DNA of 64,000 nt from Paragordius varius (lineage: Eukaryota > Animalia > Nematomorpha), in the NCBI GenBank assembly GCA_964247055.1, contig OZ176057.1, positions 186,001 to 250,000 on the forward strand, written 5' to 3'. The position numbers and the translations under genes were made by a program. This document shows positions 4,445-64,000 of the stretch, piece after piece; within the stretch, counting starts at the first letter, position 1; each line of letters opens with the position of its first letter. The notes under the pieces were generated by a model. That model saw only the letters and a program-made list of their open reading frames with translations. It had not been told where the DNA came from and did no database searches.

Positions 4445-7400
4445 ATCCATCCTAATACTGAAAAGGGGTGGTTTCGGTGGTGGATGTAAACTCAATATAC
4501 GATAATCCATTAAGACAGTTGCATCAATCAGGTCCAAGTCTTACAAAAAACCGTCCGGCAAAATCTGTTCAAATTGGTTCTCAGCCAAATCAACCACTAT
4601 TCTTAACTCCATCTATCCTAATACTGAAAAGGGGTGGTTTCGGTGGCGGATGGATGTAAACTAAATATACGAATATCCATTAAGACAGTTGCATCAATCA
4701 GGTCCAAGTCTTACAAAAAACCGTCCGGCAAAATCTGTTCAAATTGGTTCTCAGCCAAATCAACCAAACTTCTTAACTCCATCTATCCTAATACTGAAAA
4801 GGGGTGGTTTCGGTGGCGGATGGATGTAAATTCAATATACGAATATCCATTAAGACAGTTGCATCAATCAGGTCCAAGTCTTACAAAAAACCGTCCGGCA
4901 AAATCTGTTCAAATTGGTTCTCAGCCAAATCAACCAACCTTCTTAACTCCATCTATCCTAATACTGAAAAGGGGTGGTTTCGGTGGCGGATGGATGTAAA
5001 CTCAATATACGAATATCCATTAAGACAGTTGCATCAATCAGGTCCAAGTCTTACAAAAAACCGTCCGGCAAAATCTGTTCAAATTGGTTCTCAGCCAAAT
5101 CAACCACCATTCTTAACTCCATCTATCCTAATACTGAAAAGGGGTGGTTTCGGTGGCGGATGGATGTAAACTCAATATACGAATATCCATTAAGACAGTT
5201 GCATCAATCAGGTCCAAGTCTTACAAAAAACCGTCCGGCAAAATCTGTTCAAATTGGTTCTCAGCCAAATCAACCAACCTTCTTAACTCCATCTATCCTA
5301 ATACTGAAAAGGGGTGGTTTCGGTGGCGGATGGATTTAAACTCAATATACGAATATCCATTAAGACAGTTACATCAATCAGGTCCAAGTCTTACAAAAAA
5401 CCGTCCGGCAAAATCTGTTCAAATTGGTTCTCAGCCAAATCAACCACCATTCTTAACTCCATCTATCCTAAAACTGAAAAGGGGTGGTTTCGGTGGCGGA
5501 TGGATTTAAACTCAATATACGAATATCCATTAAGACAGTTGCATCAATCAGGTCCAAGTCTTACAAAAAACCGTCCGGCAAAATCTGTTCAAATTGGTTC
5601 TCAGCCAAATCAACCACCATTCTTAACTCCATCTATCCTAATACTGAAAAGGGGTGGTTTCGGTGGCGGATGGATGTAAACTCAATATACGAATATCCAT
5701 TAAGACAGTTGCATCAATCAGGTCCAAGTCTTACAAAAAACCGTCCGGCAAAATCTGTTCAAATTGGTTCTCAGCCAAATCAACCAACCTTCTTAACTCC
5801 ATCTATCCTAATACTGAAAAGGGGTGGTTTCGGTGGCGGATGGATGTAAACTCAATATACGAATATCCATTAAGACCGTTGCATCAATCAGGTCCAAATC
5901 TTACAAAAAACCGTCCGGCAAAATCTGTTCAAATTGGTTCTCAGCCAAATCAACCAACCTTCTTAACTCCATCTATCCTAATACTGAAAAGGGGTGGTTT
6001 CGGTGGCGGATGGATGTAAACTCAATATACGAATATCCATTAAGACCGTTGCATCAATCAGGTCCAAATCTTACAAAAAACCGTCCGGCAAAATCTGTTC
6101 AAATTGGTTCTCAGCCAAATCAACCACCATTCTTAACTCCATCTATCCTAATACTGAAAAGGGGTGGTTTCGGTGGCGGATGGATGTAAACTCAATATAC
6201 GAATATCCATTAAGACAGTTGCATCAATCAGGTCCAAGTCTTACAAAAAACCGTCCGGCAAAATCTGTTCAAATTGGTTCTCAGCCAAATCAACCAACCT
6301 TCTTAACTCCATCTATCCTAATACTGAAAAGGGGTGGTTTCGGTGGCGGATGGATGTAAACTCAATATACGAATATCCATTAAGACCGTTGCATCAATCA
6401 GGTCCAAATCTTACAAAAAACCGTCCGGCAAAATCTGTTCAAATTGGTTCTCAGCCAAATCAACCACCATTCTTAACTCCATCTATCCTAATACTGAAAA
6501 GGGGTGGTTTCGGTGGCGGATGGATGTAAACTCAATATACGAATATCCATTAAGACAGTTGCATCAATCAGGTTCTTACAAAAAACCGTCCGGCAAAATC
6601 TGTTCAAATTGGTTCTCAGCCAAATCAACCAACCTTCTTAACTCCATCTATCCTAATACTGAAAAGGGGTGGTTTCGGTGGCGGATGGATGTAAACTCAA
6701 TATACGAATATCCATTAAGACAGTTGCATCAATCAGGTCCAAGTCTTACAAAAAACCGTCCGGCAAAATCTGTTCAAATTGGTTCTCAGCCAAATCAACC
6801 ACCATTCTTAACTCCATCTATCCTAATACTGAAAAGGGGTGGTTTCGGTGGCGGATGGATGTATGCTCAATATACGAATATTCATTAAGACAGGGTCATC
6901 AATCAGGTCCAAGTCTTACAAAAAACCGTCCGGCAAAATCTGTTCAAATTGGTTCTCAGCCAAATCAACCAACCTTCTTAACTCCATCTATCCTAATACT
7001 GAAAAGGGGTGGTTTCGGTGGCGGATGGATGTAAACTCAATATACGAATATCCATTAAGACCGTTGCATCAATCAGGTCCAAGTCTTACAAAAAACCGTC
7101 CGGCAAAATCTGTTCAAATTGGTTCTCAGCCATATCAACCACCATTCTTAACTCCATCTATCCTAATACTGAAAAGGGGTGGTTTCGGTGGCGGATGGAT
7201 GTAAACTCAATATACGAATATCCATTAAGACAGTTGCATCAATCAGGTCCAAGTCTTACAAAAAACCGTCCGGCAAAATCTGTTCAAATTGGTTCTCAGC
7301 CAAATCAACCAACCTTCCTAACTCCATCTATCCTAATACTGAAAAGGGGTGGTTTCGGTGGCGGATGGATGTAAACTCAATATACGAATATCCATTAAGA

Positions 7401-7880
7401 CAGTTGCATCAATCAGGTCCAAGTCTTACAAAAAACCGTCCGGCAAAATCTGTTCAAATTGGTTCTCAGCCATATCAACCACCATTCTTAACTCCATCTA
7501 TCCTAATACTGAAAAGGGGTGGTTTCGGTGGCGGATGGATGTAAACTCAATATACGAATATCCATTAAGACAGTTGCATCAATCAGGTCCAAGTCTTACA
7601 AAAAACCGTCCGGCAAAATCTGTTCAAATTGGTTCTCAGCCAAATCAACCACCATTCTTAACTCCATCTATCCTAATACTGAAAAGGGGTGGTTTCGGTG
7701 GCGGATGGATGTAAACTCAATATACGAATATCCATTAAGACAGTTGCATCAATCAGGTCCAAGTCTTACAAAAAACCGTCCGGCAAAATCTGTTCAAATT
7801 GGTTCTCAGCCAAATCAACCAACCTTCCTAACTCCATCTATCCTAATACTGAAAAGCGGTGGTTTCGGTGGCGGATGGAT
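4445..7880. repeat. Homogeneous 170-bp tandem repeat array, about 20 copies
   Basis: The unit gtaaactcaatatacgaatatccattaagacagttgcatc...aaaaggggtggtttcggtggcggatggat recurs every 170 nt; one unit near 6572 has a 5-nt deletion. It is clearly GC-richer than its flanks. The staggered 121-aa ORFs in the track result from 170 not being a multiple of 3. Confidence 0.97.
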
Positions 7881-8484
7881 CCAAATCATAATAATAAGAT
7901 TATCTATGTAGACCAACATCAAAAACATCTAATGCTTTAAGACATTTTCCTTTTCATATAAATCCAATACTCACTGTAAATACTTATTTACAAAAAAATT
8001 TTGTTATAACTATTATTTAATTAATGTTTTATTATTCAAACCCCCAAAAATGGGGTCACTATATCATCAAAAAAATAAATAATATAATCATATATAATAT
8101 ATTGAGATATGGTATGGTTATTTTTTACAATCTATTTTTCGTATCTTGTCAGTGATGAATTAGAGCAGATAGCGATTCCGATACCCTTTATTTTTTAGAA
8201 CACTAATATTTTTTACAATTGATATCAAAGTTATTGGCAAGATTTATTTTATAAATTAAAACTAAAACAGTTGTTCTTAAAAAATAAAAATTATAGACAA
8301 AACGTAGCAGCTGCGAAGATATTTGTGTTGGATGCCCCTGTAATAGAGCTTTTTGACTTTATATGCTAATATGTGTATATATATATATATAGTATAAATT
8401 GACATTATACGAAAACGTTAAATATAAAAACAAATATTTTTTCCTAAAAAACAGAAAAACATTTTTATCTAAATTAAAAATATA

Positions 8485-18074: not shown

Positions 18075-21000
18075 TAGGGTCGTTTGTGTCCACGAAAGTA
18101 AGATCTAACTTAGTTACATATGAGAGTAATCCGAGTCGTTTATTTACAATTCCTTCTCACCAACCATTCACTATTTCATTTTTTATATATATACTTTTTC
18201 GTTTTCATGGTATTCGTGATTTAATTGTACATCGACTAAGAAGGTTTGTTTCTATTTTAGCTAGGGTTGTGATTTTGACCCCCTTTTTTAAAAAAAGGGG
18301 TCAGACCTAGGTCGGACCATATGTTATTGCCAATAATAAATAACTACATGCCTATATACCTGATAAAACATAAAAAAGGTTTTTGTCATATAGTATATTT
18401 TTTTAAAAGTCTACTTTCACCAATTCTGAGATTTTTTCTAATTATATAAAGTTTTAAACCACAAAAGTAAAACTAACAAGATAATATGGAATTTATTGAA
18501 ACCTATTTTATGGTCTAATTATCCCATTAATTTAATGGATTCGACTATTAAAAATATTATTTTTATATATTCCATCAACTTCTATTTTTATATCTTCATA
18601 ACATGAATCTAGTAATTCCTTGGAAATCTTTTTTATATTTGGAATAGCATATTCGGTTTTTATTATGAATGAAACTCCGAAAATATTTATTTTCAACTAT
18701 GTTTAGAGTTGATGATGTAAAAATAAATTTTGCTATAGTTTCTGGCTTCTAGAAAACAGAAATTTTTAAGAATACTTAAGAAATTAAATACTTAGGTTGC
18801 TTTCGACCATCACCTTATGTCTCATAATTTATTTCATGAACTTCTTTCAGATATTTCTTCATTCGGTTTTTAATTATATATATAGTGTAATTGAATTTCT
18901 TGCATGTAACTTGATTTTTTTTGGATCGAAAAATTTCCACAAGGCTGATTTCATTATGATTTAGGAAGTGAAGAAAAATGTGTATCATATAATATTTAAA
19001 AAAAATAACACATATTTATATAATAAAAGTTTTGTTTTCCCAAAAATTGTAAAATAAAAAAAAAAAAATTTACCTAGGTCATTTTTTTCGTGGTGACCAT
19101 GGTCATTACCTAGGTCATGACCCTAGATCATTTAACTAATGGGCACAACCCTAATTTTAGCCATGTGAATGGATTAGGTGGAGTACGTTTTAGGAAATGT
19201 TGTGCGGGACAGTATTTGTAGCACTACGTATGTTAGTGCAGTCTCCCCAAAGCGTGTTATATATTTTTGATTGTGGGTTACCGTCTTCTGCTGACCAATA
19301 ATGTGTTTTGAGGATTTATATCACTCGTTCCACCATTCCACTTGTTTTTGGATGATAGGAAACTGATGTTATATGTTTAATGTTTTCCGTTCCCATGAAT
19401 TTTTTAAGCTCCTCAGATGTAAAGTAAGACGCGTTGTCGGTTACTATCATTCTTGGTGATCCATACCGACTGAAACATTCGTCAGGAAATTTAAAATATT
19501 AATCGTCGATATCATTTCGATAGTTTAACTTCGACCCGAGAATAACTTTGAATAAGAACTATCCAATAATAAATGTCTATCGGGCCGCTATATATAGATG
19601 TAATCTCTCCCATATTGCTGTATTAGTGTTTTAATTGTATGTGGGATTCATTTTTTTCATCGGACGGTTTTCTTGACATTTTTTACACGTATCTACCCAT
19701 TTATTTATGTCGCTTTCCATGTTGTGCCAAAAGACTATTTTTCTTGCTTGTTCGTACATTGTTTTGGACCTGTGGTGTCCGACGTGTAATAATTGTAAGA
19801 TATTTACTTTTCGAGATGCGGGAATTATTAATCTGTCATGCCAATATAATAACCCGTACGTATTTTCATATTCATTTCTAGGGAATAGATGTAATATTTT
19901 ATTGGACCAGTTGTTTGTTCTTTGTGCACTTATTCCCTGTTTAATACAGGGTCGGTTTCGGTCTGGCTTAATATGGACACGATTTATATAGAATAGATTA
20001 CTATTGACAAACCTTACATGTTCTGCTGTTTGAGGGCTTTCTGTATCTTGTTGTTGTGGTTCTGTCGGAATGCGGGACAATGGATATGCAATGTTTTCGT
20101 GGCTTTTAATGTACCGTAGATTGTAATTAAATTGGCTAGCTTTATATATATAACGTAGTAGCATGAAATCATTTATTTAGTCTAGTTTACGATTATTTCC
20201 AAACAGCTTTATTAGTGGTTTATCAGTACGCAGTTCAAACTTCTTTGCGGTAATAAACGTTTTAATTTTTTAAAAGCGAAAAGTATGGCTTGTGATTCTT
20301 TTCTATCACTGAATAATTTTCTTCGGGTTTGGACCACGTAGGTGCGTAGGCAATGGGTTTATTTATGCCCTCTTGCGTGGTCTATAGTAACACTGCTCTG
20401 TATCCTTTATTCGAGGCGTCTGTTTCGATTATTATAGGTAAACTCAGGGTTGAACGGATTTAGTTTAACGGTATGACATATTAAATTTTTGGTTAAAACA
20501 GTCCTCGTGGTTTCGATATCCAGGGGTTTTTATAACTGCTTAGGTCGTGAAGTATAGCCAAACTTCCACAATTTCGGGAGGAATCGTGTTTTATTAAGCC
20601 TAAGAAGGACTTGAGTGTTATTTTGTCATTGGGTCTTGGGAAGTCTTGAATGGCTTTAACTTTATTGGCGGCTGGTGATATGCCGTTTTTTGATATAATA
20701 TATAAATAGCTTACAGACGGTTGAAAAAGTTTTAGTATGCTTTTACTTAATTTTAAACCAGATTTGTCAGGACGCTTAAATACCCTTTCTAAGTTTCTTT
20801 TATGTTCGTTTCGGTTTTTTCCTGTTATTAAAATATCGTCTAAATATACAGCTGCTGGGCAGTCACCTAAAATCTTATCCATTAATCTTTGAAAAATGCA
20901 GGGGGCGCTTATTAGGCCAAAGGGAAGCCTTTTATATGTAAAATAACCTAGAGATGTGGTAATTGTTAGTAACTTTTGATTTTCTAGATTTACTGGGCAG

Positions 21001-24819: not shown

Positions 24820-25685
24820 TCAAATTCTATTTATTTTTCTACGTATATTATGTGTTGCGGATAATTTGGTGATTATATTTGGTTTTTTTCCATTGTTTTC
24901 ACGGGGTACCCAGAAAGTCGTGGCGGCGACTTCTGGACACCCCTGATATGAAGTATAAAGCGCAATCTTAATCCTCATTTGATGCTTTAATATAATTGCA
25001 TATGTAGAGTATTTGTGCAAATTATTCGCGGGGGCCCAAAAACTCGTGGCGGCGAGTTCTGAAGCCTCCGGAATTAAACCAATGTTTTGAGTTTTCTTTT
25101 CACATCATATACGGGATGTCATACGACTGGCTATAGATCTGTATCTATTGTACCAAACTAAAGGATTATGATTTCTTAATTTAAAAGCTAGCATTGGATT
25201 ATCTATATTTCTTTTGACATAAATTATTTTTCTTAGTAGAGAGAATATTTCTTCAATAGGGGTAACAATAGAGGTTATCGTTAAAGTTTCTTGCTGATTT
25301 TTTAATATTGAATGATTTATTTTATGCATTTTTTTCAAATTTAATTAAATAATCAACAATCAATTATAACACGTCATATCAACATCATTTAGTATAATAG
25401 CTGACAATATAAACATAAATTTGATACAATTTAAAATCGATATTTTGATAACTTTACTTTTTAAGCTTGTCTACAACGAGCAATTATAAAGTTAAATTTT
25501 AATTTAATTATAAATTCTTGATTAAAAATCGTTAAAACTGTCAAATAAAAATTACTATCATGAAATCAATAGTTAACTTTATTGCTTTGATTGTATTTTC
25601 ATAGCTAAATTGAATATTTAATTTTACACGATCTAAGTATTATTAATTTTTATACGCTACTCTGAATGGTAAAAACAATTATATT
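24820..25685 (-). repeat. Dispersed repeat module, inverted near-identical copy of 63150-64000
   Basis: Base-by-base comparison shows roughly 94-95% identity (by eye) over the upstream region, ORF and hairpin region. Confidence 0.93.
25105..25329 (-). CDS. Unknown 74-aa protein (copy 1)
   Basis: ATG to TGA intact in both copies; 7 of 8 nucleotide differences from copy 2 are synonymous. Confidence 0.6.
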   Translation of the reverse strand: MHKINHSILKNQQETLTITSIVTPIEEIFSLLRKIIYVKRNIDNPMLAFKLRNHNPLVWYNRYRSIASRMTSRI

Positions 25686-30349: not shown

Positions 30350-33300
30350 TTAAGCAAGTATTTTTAACCGCTTTTTTAGGGTTTGTAAAGGCGTTTCCAA
30401 AATTTCTTTAAAAGTCTCTTTTGACTTTGTTTGAGATTTGTTACATTGTACGTCTTGAACACTTTTTTCAGTTTTTTCTTTTTTTGTTATGAAATTATAT
30501 GGACCATGTATCTTTTCTCCGAGCGCTTCTGTGTTTATAACATTCCTATCACCATACAAAGCAAATTTTTCTGGCATAGTTTCAAGAGACCACTCAAAAA
30601 TTCTAAAAAATAAATTTACGAAAAAAATTAAACGTTTTATCGCGACTTTCCGTTTCCCAAATGTTGGAATAAACATGTTGCTCTCCAAATTGTTCAATGA
30701 CATCCTAAATTATAATTGATAACATATGTTACGATATAAATTTAAATTATCAAGAACGAGAAATCATAAATTATCTACTAAACCAAGGGTATCGCCGCAT
30801 ATGAAATGTATTAGGGCATTCATAATATAATTGATCAGTTTTAAAACATAAAACTGAAAATTGAAAAAACGGAATGTAACAATTTTACCAGCAGATTTGG
30901 ATAGACTTATTTAAATAAAATTGTTAAGAATTATCATTTTTAATAAAATTTTATGAGCATGTTTTTTGCAAAGTATGAATTCAAATTTTCTGGCAAAACT
31001 CAAAATCTCGAGGGTTTGCATGCGGCCCGCGTGTTTAAACAAACTATCATTTTTCAACCGAAACGCTTAATTTTACTTTCCACTTATGAATTAACTCTAC
31101 CTTATTCAATATTTTGTTTCAAATAAAAAATTTTAAAATTTTGAAAGGTATGTATAGTTATTCCCTTATAAAAATTTTAAAAATTGGTTTTCTTGTATCA
31201 ACCAAAATATTTAATCTAATAAAGCCAAAACTTGCATTTCAATAATGATTAACTGCTTAGATAAGTGGCCTTAATTACTTAAATAATAACTGAAAATGTT
31301 TGGAATTATAAAATAAAATATAAGGAATTATTTGCAACAAAGGCTGTCATTCATACTTTTTATATTTTAATTAATAGAAAATTAAGATGGAATATTGTAA
31401 TAAATATATTACACCTGTAAATAAATAACCCACCTAAAAAAATTTATCTTTTAGGTTTTGACTTGATATAAATGTTTTTATTGCATAAATGTGCTTTTTT
31501 TATAAAAGTCTAACTTTTTTAAATAGAGTTAATATCGAAATTAATTCACGGACAAAACGTAAAAAAATACAAAGACAAATATTTTTGGCTAAAATTTAAT
31601 TTTACTTTTGTTTATAACTTAAAGTATAAAAGGTATGTTGGTAACACAATTTATTATATATTTACGATTATAAATAAATGATTTATTTTTATGGGTTGAA
31701 TCAAGGTTTAAAATTTATGTATGGTTAATATTTTTTGCAAAAAATTGTCTTTAAATGTCAAATATGTTTTTTTAAATTTAATCTATATAAGTGTTCAGAT
31801 TTTTCAAATAACCTACATGAATGCAATAATATACTTTTTTAATTAGTGTCAACTTTATGAAAATAATTTTTACTGATAAAACTCCAAACAAATTGAATGC
31901 AAATATATTAAATCAGTGGAATGCAGTAAAATGTAAATTTAAATTCAATATTGAAAAAAAGTTACTCTAAGCAAATATAATATTAAAAAAGACAACCATA
32001 CTTTCCAAACCTTATATAATATTAAGTTATAAATATTAACCAATTATATCAGGCAAAAAATTGTCTTTTGTAATTTTTTAAGACATTAATTGTAAAATAC
32101 TATAATCAAACACAAAAAAAGTTAATACCTCATATTGATCAAAATCTATGCTCTGTTTAGTTGGGTCCTTTTCAAATTTTCGATTGTAATGTGTATAATG
32201 AACCTATGCAAGAGTAAAAAAATATACGGACTTTCTTTTTAACATAAATACTATTCATTTGAAACATATATAATTGGGTGTGCTATTAATTTAAATTTCT
32301 ATCACCCTATCTGTGTGTAATTTAAAATGTTAGGTTATAAATAAGATAAAACAAAAGTAATATAATATATGATTTCTACAAAAAATTGTCTTTATAGAGT
32401 AAAAATTGAAATTTTACGGACACGTATAATTCTAAATTTTTTTCTAAAAGATACCCATAGTTTTCCAAACTAATCATATTCCCACCATTTAATAACAAGA
32501 ATAAATATATAATTAATTATTTACCAATTTACATCTTTATTTTAAACTTCTTTGGAAAAAAAGAGTTAACTTTAAATTAATCAAGATTTAAAAAGTATAG
32601 TTGTCTTTTAGACAAAAAATATTTGTCTTTATATTTTTACGTTTTGTCCGTATTCAGTTTTTACTGTATTATTAAAAATTAAAAACATACTGACAATGAT
32701 TATCTTATGATTAAAATTTGTCTTTATAACTGAGAATATTACTTGTTTAAGAATTAGACCCAGGCCCGGGCATTTGGGAATAAGGCTTGAGTGAGGAAGC
32801 CATGCATTGTGAATGTAATTCAAATCGACTAATCCTCGGATATAAGCCATCACTAAACCTAAAAACACATTTTACAGTAAATTTATAGAAATAAAATAAA
32901 AGCAAAAAAATTTAATATGAAGGAAACCGTATGTATACCATTTAGAATTCAAATTCAGCCTCGAACAATTCAAATTGGCCCTAAAAATAAATTATGTGTT
33001 TTCGAACTAATAAAACTCATCATTAATACAAAATATATTCTTATTGATTAGTTTATAAGTATTTAAATATTATATTAATTTTGAAGAATATTTCATTTTT
33101 TAAAAATAAGTAATTTTTAATGTTAAAAAACACATAATTTATTTTAGGGTGATTTTGAATTGTTTGAGGGTGAACTTGAACTGTAAATGGTATATTTATT
33201 AAACATTTAAATTTACAGTAAAACTTAACTATAAAGTTATATATATATATATATATATATTTCAAAAAGACAACCTTACTCTTTCAAATGGTTTGGGATT

Positions 33301-61169: not shown

Positions 61170-62600
61170 TATATTTATAATAAATTAATGCTTTCAATAC
61201 ATTTACAATGCTATCTCTTTTTTGTTGACCTGAGATTCTTTCGTCTGTCAAAGCACTATCCATATTGTCTTCATCTTAACTATCATCATCGTTATTAAAA
61301 TTATCTAAATCAATTGATATCACATCATCTATATCAAAATCATCCTTTAAAAATTTAGCCATGTTATGTAGAACGGCGTAGCTTACAATAATATTTACTG
61401 CGGTATCCAAATGGACTCGCATTTTATTATGCAAAATCGGAAACCTGCGTTTGAATTGACCAAATAGCTTTTAAATGACTATTCTTTCTCCAGCATGGAA
61501 TGTATTAAACTTAGTTTGTAAAAGGCTGTTAGGGTTTTAAAATGGTGTTAATATATACCAATTGCACTTCAAGAGTGTCCTTGAACACTTTAAGTTGGTC
61601 CTTGAACAATATAAGTTGGTCCTTGAACAGTTCAAGTTGGTCCTTGAACATTTCAAGTTGGTGCTTGAACACTTAAAGTTGGTCCTTTGACTTTTTTGTT
61701 TTGTTTTTAACTTTTATCAATCAAATGGTAAATAATTCATCTATTTTATTGATTTTAACCTATTTTCTATTATTTAACAAAAATTTTAAATCGATACCAA
61801 CTTTTAATCTTTGAGATTTTTCATTAAAAATTTTATTTTTAAATGAATAAATTTAAAATAAAGAAAATTAGGTTAATAATTAATAAAATTAAAAAATAAA
61901 TGCAAAAATTATGGTTAAATCAAAATTTATAAATTTTAAGGACCAACTTGAACTGTTCAAGGACCAACTTGAAATGTTCAAGGACACTCTTGAAGTGCAA
62001 ATGGTATATATGGAGTAATTCCATACCCACTGTCACCCAATAGTGCCGCATTGGTATTGGCTAAAAAGGAACGTTTATACTTTTGCGGAAAATCCGGCTA
62101 TCATGAACGCTTCCCGGCATTTTAACGTTTAAACTCGTTATAAATTCATCACCGTCACAGTTAAATTGACAATTAAGGCTATAACGGCCTTTTCGGTTGA
62201 TATATTCGTCACCAAATTCCTTAGGCCTCATGATGTCAATGTGAGTACAGTCTATGACACCGATAACTGTTGGCATCTTATGATTCTTCTGTCAACGTTG
62301 TTTAGCGTCTTCTAGTTGGAACTGGTCAGATGGAAATCTGATCCATTTACTAGCACTGTCACAAAATTTTTCCGCTACTTTAGATACTTTTTTAGTAACG
62401 GTTGATCGTTCTACACCAAAGAAAAAATCCCCACACAACATCTAGGTGAAAGTGCGCCACCTCTTTTTTCAATAATATCATTAGGGAAATTTGTGAAGAA
62501 ATCAATGCTTTCATCATTAAATCTTAACAAACGTTCCATATGTTGCAATATTTTTTGCGCTCCGATTTGTTTTTGAAATGGTTCATGTACATTTCTGTAA
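61170..62600 (-). pseudogene. PIF/Harbinger (HARBI1-like) transposase pseudogene
   Basis: WIRFP, VIGVIDCTHI, NRKGRYSLNCQ, PGSVHDSRIF, LLGDSGY, FNTFHAGER and FGQFKRRF...VLHN with an acidic tail. Contains stops and a MITE insertion; element ends not found. Confidence 0.9.
61556..62006. mobile_element. Foldback-like MITE (subfamily A) inserted into the Harbinger transposase
   Basis: TACCAATTGCACTTCAAGAGTGTCC...GGACACTCTTGAAGTGCAAATGGTA. Removing it with one TA restores GDSGYGITPYILTP. Confidence 0.9.
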
Positions 62601-63493
62601 TCAGAAAAAAATAGAAGGATATTTTAAAAGGTTATATATGTATTTTTAAAATAAATTAACCTTAATTTATAGATATACAGGATTAATGACAAAAGTTGTT
62701 CGGGGTGCGTTCTATTAAAGTAGATACGTTTATTAACGTTTAACAATCTATATAAATATACAAATTTACTTGAATTTAAATTGTATTTTTACAGATATCA
62801 CCTGCCCTCAAATATACCTTTGTTAAATTTTTTAAGCGAAATTGTTATTTAGTGAGACTAATGTTGCTTAAAATAAATAATTAAGATATAATCTAAAATT
62901 ATATATGTATTATACCTGTATTATGTTAAACTTGTAGTAAAAAAATATAAGAGTGTTTGAAGGGCGAATGGTTTCTTAAAAGCTATAGGTATACGGTGGA
63001 ATATTTAAAAATTTTAATATTTATTATATTTTAACATACCTAATTTTGAGTTTAAATAAATGCATATTGTATTGGGTGGTTATTCTTTGTTGCCTTAATC
63101 AATAAATTTTCGTTGTAAAATTTTAAAATATTCCCAGCATAATTTGAATTATAATAGTTTTTAACATTCAGAGTAGCGTATAAAAATTAATAAAACTTAG
63201 ATCGTGTAAAATTAAATATTCAATTTAGCTATGAAAATACAACATAGCAATAAAGTTAACTATTAATTTCATCATAGTAGTTTTATTTGAGTTTTAACGA
63301 TTTTTAATCAAGAATTTATAATTAAATTAAAATTTAACTTCATAATTGCTCGTTGTAGACAAGCTTAAAAAGTAAAGTTATCAAAATATTGATTTTAAAT
63401 TGTATCAAATTTATGTTTATATTGTCATATACTAAATGATGTATATATGACGTGTTATAATTGATTGTTGATTATTTAGTTAAATTTGAAAAA

Positions 63494-63718
63494 ATGCATA
63501 AAATAAATCATTCAATATTAAAAAATCAGCAAGAAACTTTAACGATCACCTCTATTGTTACCCCAATTGAAGAAATATTCTCTCTTTTGAGAAAAATGAT
63601 ATACGTCAAAAGAAATATAGATAATCCAATGCTAGCTTTTAAATTAAGAAATCATAATCCTTTAGTTTGGTACAATAGATACAGATCTATAGCCAGTCGT
63701 ATGACATCCCGTATATGA
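63494..63718 (+). CDS. Unknown 74-aa protein (copy 2), MHKINHSILKNQQ...RSIASRMTSRI
   Basis: Intact ORF with synonymous-biased divergence from copy 1. Confidence 0.6.
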   Translation: MHKINHSILKNQQETLTITSIVTPIEEIFSLLRKMIYVKRNIDNPMLAFKLRNHNPLVWYNRYRSIASRMTSRI

Positions 63719-63748
63719 TGTGAAAAGAAAACTCAAAACATTGGTTTA

Positions 63749-63920
63749 ATTCCGGGGGCTTCGGAACTCGCCGCCACGAGTTTTTGGGCCCCCGCGAATA
63801 ATTTGAAAAAATACTCTACATATGCAATTCAATTAAAGCATCGAATGAGGATCGAGATTGCGCTTTATACTTCATATCAGGGGTGTCCACAAGTCGCCGC
63901 CACGACTTTCTGGGCACTCC
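63749..63920 (+). other. Twin long hairpins with an identical CCGCCA loop (63749-63799 and 63880-63920); mirrored at 25074-25024 and 24943-24903
   Basis: Stems of about 22 and 17 bp that pair well only if G-U is allowed on this strand. Confidence 0.6.
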
Positions 63921-64000
63921 GTGAAAACAATGGAAAAATAAACCAAATATAATAACCATATTATCCGCAATAAATAATATACGTAGAAAAATAAATAGAA

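Follow-up and report, generated by a model that had tools for sequence, protein, structure and literature searches.

Twin hairpins probably derived from the end of a hAT-like MITE: candidate RNA stem-loops downstream of a locally duplicated orphan gene

Two GC-rich hairpins with the same CCGCCA loop lie just downstream of a small orphan gene (hereafter ORF74) in a eukaryotic genome of 110 Mb and ~25% GC, and it is very likely, as judged from homology, that both originate from the 5'-terminal 60-90 bp of a dispersed hAT-like MITE. The reading that we favor, to which as a whole we give slightly less than an even chance, is that these are MITE-end-derived, template-switched and locally duplicated hairpins, which probably form strand-specific RNA stem-loops 3' of ORF74. 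Transposon-derived hairpins are already known as a kind, and those described here are not a new class of element.

The stretch of DNA analyzed here, called the window throughout, is 64,000 nt long (G000:C8:186001-250000) and contains, in addition to the ORF74 unit, satellites and fragments of LTR-retrotransposon and Harbinger. A tandem satellite with a 170-bp period (~19 units, window 4634-7911) forms the GC peak of the window (36-40%) and mimics a ladder of overlapping 121-aa ORFs. Pieces of LTR-retrotransposon pol (integrase- and reverse-transcriptase-like ORFs), together with a piece of what we take, from a DDE_Tnp_4-like motif recognized by eye only, to be a Harbinger/PIF-type transposase, lie at 19631-20882 (-) and 62061-62441 (-), immediately upstream of the ORF74 unit. 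Short tandem repeats at 61529-62051 can be read as LEQFKLV heptads in several frames and on both strands, and this repeat recurs in the 640-kb array. The features of the unit and its copies are collected in Table 1.

Table 1. Positions of the ORF74 unit, its hairpins and its copies (window coordinates unless a locus or contig C8 is named).
Feature	Position	Strand	Description
Promoter-like conserved box	63427..63454	+	TATA-like run, then TGACGTG; ~40 nt upstream of the ORF start
ORF74 (orphan gene, small basic helical protein)	63494..63718	+	74 aa in subfamily A; 78-85 aa in subfamily B
Candidate enclosing helix	63740-63747 with ~63847-63858 (span 63740..63858)	+	RNAalifold consensus; encloses hairpin 1 and a small middle hairpin at 63819-63847
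Hairpin 1	63749..63799	+	21 bp, four G-U pairs; inner stem AACTCG/CGAGTT; loop CCGCCA at 63771-63776
Hairpin 2	63877..63924	+	19 bp; inner stem AAGTCG/CGACTT; loop CCGCCA at 63897-63902
AATAAA-containing motif	63988..63998	+	~65 nt past hairpin 2; kept in subfamilies A and B
Second unit copy	24899..25329	-	ORF 25108-25329; hairpin 1 25024-25074; hairpin 2 24899-24946
Subfamily A	L001-L003		ORF intact
Subfamily B	L004-L007		ORF intact, 78 aa; 150-nt insert between ORF and hairpin 1
Subfamily C	L008-L010		ORF broken
Other copies	L030; L011, L012, L031		L030, decayed D copy; L011, L012 and L031, single-hairpin copies
Inverted duplication of ORF74 5' part	L008:1719-2396 (C8 ~644.9-645.6 kb)		C-type unit
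Inverted duplication of ORF74 5' part	L009:1756-2418 (C8 ~626.7-627.5 kb)		C-type unit
Inverted duplication of ORF74 5' part	L010:733-1454 (C8 ~706.8-707.5 kb)		C-type unit

The hairpins are part of a unit of ~1.3 kb (window ~63340-64690), in which a promoter-like box, the ORF, the twin hairpins and a distal segment follow one another in this order, and the second copy in the window matches the first with a module that is 94% identical and an ORF that is 99% identical at the protein level. The 12-mer TCGCCGCCACGA, which spans the loop, occurs four times in the window, where 0.01 occurrences are expected, and exactly 20 times in the entire genome, in every case within kb 210-708 of contig C8. 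A DNA search recovered 12 loci in the C8 region, to which a covariance model adds decayed copies at 488 kb and 715-716 kb. Because all copies lie on one contig and are arranged in tandem and inverted segmental duplications, the unit is not a mobile element but a gene family that was duplicated locally, within 0.5 Mb of that contig. The original prediction had suggested a compact mobile module, and this suggestion, like the treatment of the whole unit as a transposon, has to be given up: the copies are confined to C8 210-716 kb, bounding repeats and target duplications are absent, and the ORF is a short, all-helical orphan.

The surroundings of the units are themselves rearranged. In each C-type unit the 5' part of ORF74 is duplicated in inverted, head-to-head orientation, with arms of 73-99 nt that are 86-96% complementary and about 510-520 nt apart, and a read-through transcript of this arrangement would give a long hairpin RNA against the ORF74 family. 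Two identical 85-aa variants of ORF74 with a different C-terminus form a 523-bp tandem duplication (L006:2352-3129, C8:630.4-631.2 kb), in which the ORFs are intact and hairpins are absent. The distal part of the unit (C8 ~250160-250790, L001:1920-2550, past the window) has an older paralog on contig C5 (L064:4210-4998, C5:11590.2-11591.0 kb) that is 67-78% identical across ~800 nt and contains neither ORF74 nor hairpins, so the ORF74 unit is a composite. A 40-nt island at a CAGCTG motif of this distal part (window-equivalent 64580-64620) has an A-B identity of 0.87 and open frames on both strands. Interleaved with the units at L013 and L016 (C8 ~621.5-622.4 and 702.6-703.6 kb) are a repeated 103-aa ORF and pieces that we presume to be of a P-type ATPase, from a motif resembling PEGLP of transmembrane segment 4; this arrangement suggests arrays of pseudogene fragments.

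By its pattern of substitution, ORF74 is a real gene under purifying selection, with dN/dS of about 0.03-0.4. Copies within subfamily A differ by 5-7 synonymous and 1-3 non-synonymous changes (dN/dS 0.03-0.12), and between subfamilies A and B the ratio is 0.2-0.4, at a saturated dS of 1.05-2.0 and a dN of about 0.4-0.5. The family has 18 matches in the genome, all on C8. Relatives were found neither in Pfam (even at E 10) nor in the ESM Atlas, a word search of 5.8 billion proteins matched nothing, and a profile search of 1.84 billion proteins returned one spurious match, a translated tandem repeat. The AlphaFold2 model of the protein consists of three helices (pLDDT 71, pTM 0.37) and has neither the confidence nor the complexity that a meaningful fold search requires. 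Upstream of the gene, the conserved box has an A-B identity of 0.75-0.80, compared with 0.55-0.67 in the adjacent upstream DNA, and is a putative promoter; downstream, the AATAAA-containing motif is a possible polyadenylation signal, of a kind that is common in AT-rich genomes. With transcription, strand and transcript ends as we infer them, the most probable place of the hairpins in the ORF74 transcript would be its 3' UTR.

In position, in their CCGCCA loops and in the 30-nt gap that separates the end of the ORF74 stop codon (63718) from the start of hairpin 1, the hairpins agree with the original prediction, and hairpin 2 opens with the MITE terminal repeat CAGGGGTGTCCA. Both fold far better than shuffled sequence, and better on the strand of the ORF than on its reverse: RNAfold gives -31.3 kcal/mol (z -4.5) for hairpin 1 and -25.7 kcal/mol (z -4.8) for hairpin 2 on the + strand, with 0 of 200 shuffles as good in each case, and -27.4 and -21.0 kcal/mol, respectively, on the other strand. 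The whole 257-nt module folds with a z of -7.4. For the candidate helix that would enclose hairpin 1, a change of TT to CC in subfamily B keeps the predicted pairing with GG (U-G to C-G), which, as the changes are one-sided only, points weakly to such a helix.

Comparison with Rfam, proposed as a check along with the original prediction, placed the hairpins in no known family: Rfam 15, searched on both strands at E up to 10, gave no credible match on either of them, and the single overlapping listing, a partial lncRNA model on the opposite strand over hairpin 2, scores 6.6 bits (E 5) where the threshold is 70, and is noise. Similarly, a metagenome scan with the hairpin core yielded three chance matches only, in unrelated GC-rich (57-67%) contigs. 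We also considered and rejected a resemblance to Sm-site snRNAs or SL RNAs, as the AAUUUGA that follows hairpin 1 is not conserved in the other subfamilies.

The origin of the hairpins is indicated by homology in both directions. A covariance model of the 23 hairpin copies only, run genome-wide, gave weak matches on other contigs outside the C8 cluster, and all five of those examined are the 5' ends of one MITE family. This family is old and dispersed, with at least 305 candidate copies of 275-310 bp and 70-75% identity, CAGGGGTGTCCAAC terminal repeats (CAGGGGTGTCC ends) and GCGGCCCGCG subterminal motifs; target duplications of 8 bp in three copies match at 7/8, 8/8 and 7/8 positions (GTTTACAT/GTTTATAT; GTTTAACA on both sides; ATTTTAAT/ATTTCAAT). 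Terminal repeats that begin with CAG and 8-bp target duplications are typical of MITEs of the hAT superfamily. In the reverse search, a profile from 13 MITE copies matched the hairpins in 10 of 10 aligned units (a 16-kb database), in the same orientation and at MITE positions 1-61 (up to 93), with E-values of 2.5e-7 to 0.4 for a search of this 16-kb size and with 14 of the 20 hairpin matches passing the nhmmer inclusion threshold. Hairpin 1 aligns to profile positions 3-75 and hairpin 2 to positions 1-61, or to 93 in some copies. The similarity extends past the stem (CCCGCGAAWAATTTGAA and CATATGCAA), and since it covers this following stretch the relation between hairpin and MITE is collinear. 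A near-full copy of the MITE is also present in the window, at 30793-31031 (-) (nhmmer E 7e-26).

Like hAT MITEs, the hairpins have the terminal CAGGGGTGTCCA and a subterminal CCCGCGAAAAATTTGAA-like stretch, in the order and orientation of the dispersed family. Unlike hAT MITEs, the module is a fragment that is not dispersed and has neither a 3' terminal repeat nor a target duplication, and its interpretation as an intact hAT-type MITE was rejected: it corresponds to the 5' 60-90 bp only, an inverted CAGGGGTGTCCA-like 3' terminal repeat is absent from any consistent place in the units, and no 8-bp duplication surrounds the hairpins or the module, as neither hairpin 1 nor hairpin 2 is flanked by repeated sequence. 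A "micro-MITE" of two abutting terminal repeats was likewise rejected, the 3' arm and its flank being collinear with MITE positions 30-75. Remnants of hAT transposases are present in the genome (at least 113 matches to the dimerisation domain), and an autonomous partner with the terminal repeats of the MITE was found in 0 of the 12 loci examined, each only 3.2 kb long. A literature search on the terminal-repeat sequence returned primer lists only.

A match to the palindromes of a known transposon had been named as an outcome that would count against the original prediction, and the result is divided: the hairpins share homology with a hAT-like MITE at its 5' terminus, but this terminus is itself a poor palindrome. 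The MITE 5' ends satisfy 9-13 of the 22 stem pairs (z +0.5 to -3.7, beyond -2.3 in one of 13) and the fold of their consensus, at -15 kcal/mol, has another shape; the hairpins of the module satisfy 18-22 of the 22 pairs, with z of -5.4 to -6.3. As the MITE terminus is not a good palindrome, the hairpin shape arose inside the C8 cluster. Five changes in 14 nt turned the outer 3' arm into a near-exact reverse complement of the terminal repeat, and on the inner side it is the 5' arm that changed, to complement the MITE-like 3' arm. These clustered changes of one arm onto the other, read without a formal test, suggest that the stems were made by template switching during replication, which we consider somewhat more probable than any other origin of the stems taken together. 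Template switching can create and maintain RNA hairpins, and it can both create and "compensate" stems without selection, according to a published study (PMC8794818). The hairpins described in that study resemble ours in that clustered changes make the arms reverse complements, with apparent compensation in one step; they differ in being known functional RNAs, whereas the substrate here is a transposon end and the switch is read from a pattern and not from a dated tree (PMC8794818).

Pair 27-40 of the stem is CG in 10 copies and GC in nine, with C-G in hairpin 1 and G-C in hairpin 2. In the aligned MITE ends these positions never pair, a C mostly facing G or C, and in the single-hairpin copy L011_b C faces C, so that the swap represents two independent repairs of one inherited mismatch. 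The double change that the original prediction called a compensatory swap is present in every twin copy. In the scenario that we propose, the end of an old hAT-like MITE would have inserted just downstream of a small orphan gene, the twin hairpins would be tandem copies, with a 126-bp period, of the first 60-90 bp of this MITE, template switching would have converted a weakly palindromic transposon end into a near-perfect stem-loop, and tandem and segmental duplications, confined to 0.5 Mb of a single chromosome, would then have multiplied gene and hairpins.

Whether the hairpins also work as RNA is a separate question, on which we lean tentatively, at some distance below even confidence, toward function: they may be stem-loops that operate in the RNA of one strand and display an invariant CCGCCA loop, serving, for instance, in protein binding, in stability or at the 3' end. 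The main rival is that they are a neutral relic homogenized by gene conversion, i.e., a truncated MITE end that was made palindromic by template-switch correction, was duplicated with its neighborhood, looks conserved through youth or gene conversion and has no function; this we regard as plausible though doubtful. There is modest evidence in the sequences for constraint at the RNA level. Across the 23 hairpin copies, 90.7% of cells pair, and a shift of the partner by one column lowers this to 52-54%. Folding favors the + strand over the - strand by a mean of 3.2 kcal/mol, and G-U cells outnumber A-C cells by 62 to 7, which upholds the strand asymmetry and the excess of wobble pairs noted in the original prediction. 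Where a non-Watson-Crick pair is fixed it is always G-U and never A-C, which speaks against a neutral relic; changes found in single copies include about as many A-C as G-U events, which speaks for one. In the seven copies with an intact ORF, the variable columns number 14 of 76 in stems, 0 of 12 in loops and 42 of 130 elsewhere (p 0.035), and the mean hairpin energy is -28.9 kcal/mol beside intact ORFs and -21.7 kcal/mol beside broken ones (p 0.015), both p-values being optimistic, as the copies are few and closely related and represent few independent events. The three broken-ORF copies show no such difference in variability between stem and other columns, and unpaired cells number 10 of 114 in these copies and 7 of 266 in the intact-ORF copies. 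The quietness of stems and loops solely beside intact ORFs, the decay of hairpins together with that of the ORF, and the persistence of GC-rich stems at the low GC content of this genome all speak against a neutral relic.

Other observations favor it. Between subfamilies A and B, a block of ~360 nt (63740-64100) has an identity of ~0.9 between flanks of 0.5-0.7, with sharp edges; it spans the AT-rich spacer and the downstream DNA, both unstructured, as evenly as the stems, and its left edge coincides with the 150-nt insertion of subfamily B. In comparisons of subfamily A with subfamily C, the same block is no better conserved than its flanks. This pattern fits gene conversion better than selection on the hairpins. 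Moreover, hairpins are missing after some intact ORFs, hairpin 2 is damaged in L002, whose ORF is intact, and template switching gives apparent compensation without selection (PMC8794818). The structured-RNA reading of the original prediction is accordingly strengthened by the strand asymmetry, the pair-preserving changes, the quieter stems beside intact ORFs and the decay beside broken ones, but only to a modest degree. A more elaborate version, in which the MITE end was reshaped into a hairpin pair bound by the small basic helical protein of ORF74, the two making up a self-sufficient module of protein and RNA, autoregulatory or packaging-like, that originated in this lineage and decays together with the broken ORF, is in our view unlikely.

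Three further readings are less likely than the neutral relic. Precursor hairpins of animal miRNAs are ~55-70 nt long and yield a 22-nt duplex, and the stem in the primary transcript is ~33 bp. The ORF74 hairpins could be small-RNA precursors, cut by Dicer into ~21-22-nt RNAs that are miRNA-like or serve as guides against the ends of hAT-type MITEs or transposons, and their 19-22-bp stems, the G-U wobbles on one strand and the 12 nt in the arms that are still identical to the MITE terminal repeat would suit this role. We nevertheless consider it improbable, because at only 46-51 nt with a 6-nt loop they are shorter than usual animal precursors, lack the ~33-bp primary stem, match none of the Rfam miRNA families, and are invariant in the loop and inner stem, not in one arm. 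MITE-derived miRNA genes are known, including hsa-mir-548 from Made1 (PMC1784062) and examples from plants (PMC9641971). As in those genes, the source of a stem-loop (here a putatively transcribed one) in or close to a gene is a short transposon of the cut-and-paste type, and copies spread by duplication; unlike those genes, in which the stem comes from both terminal repeats of a whole MITE, the hairpins here derive from the 5' end only (60-90 bp), have a secondarily formed stem, are shorter than usual precursors, and are candidate sources of small RNA at most.

Action at the level of DNA would make the palindromes sites that are bound or cut by a hAT-type (or domesticated) transposase or another dimeric DNA-binding protein, or fragile cruciforms that drive local rearrangement. 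Each arm does resemble a transposon terminal repeat, hAT transposase remnants are abundant and the surroundings are rich in duplications and inversions, but a symmetric double-stranded site does not favor the frequent, strand-biased G-T pairs, a transposase with these terminal repeats is absent from the 12 loci examined for one, and the unit has neither a 3' terminal repeat nor a target duplication; this reading is very unlikely. Least probable of all, to the point of being nearly negligible, is that the hairpins are rolling-circle ends, either the 3' end of a Helitron or the subterminal hairpins of a prokaryote-style HUH element. In their GC-richness within AT-rich DNA, the hairpins do look like Helitron tails. 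The 3' terminus of a Helitron, however, has its hairpin 10-12 nt before CTRR, where the repeat stops, whereas here the conserved CTRR end follows neither hairpin, each hairpin is flanked on either side by hundreds of bases of further homology, and the family is not dispersed. An IS200/IS605-like element of the HUH type, which would have a HUH/Y1 transposase next to it and subterminal hairpins at the two ends of a mobile unit, was rejected as well, together with the single-strand DNA recognition hairpins that the original prediction had proposed: the ORF product (74-79 aa, all helical) has no HUH domain, the 74-aa, three-helix protein has no Pfam match at E 10, the unit is not mobile, and the homology of the hairpins is to the end of a cut-and-paste MITE.

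With regard to the favored reading, as RNA stem-loops 3' of ORF74, the hairpins invite comparison with two protein-binding stem-loops known from mRNA 3' ends. The histone stem-loop has a 6-bp stem and a 4-nt loop, and the iron-responsive element (IRE) has a CAGUGN loop and a C bulge. Like these elements, the hairpins stand just after a short ORF and present a fixed loop on a conserved upper stem, in a tandem pair as in some IRE-bearing UTRs; unlike them, they match in neither sequence nor size, and binding is putative only.

If the hairpins are neutral, they are an ordinary transposon relic within a duplicated orphan-gene cluster. If they work as RNA, they would be a clean natural case of one transposon end, not a whole MITE, turned into a structured RNA. 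The intermediates coexist in one genome, from MITE ends that do not fold, through single hairpins unpaired at 27-40, to twins that pair there in two ways, and this bears on how much "compensatory" change reflects selection and how much reflects template-switch mutation.
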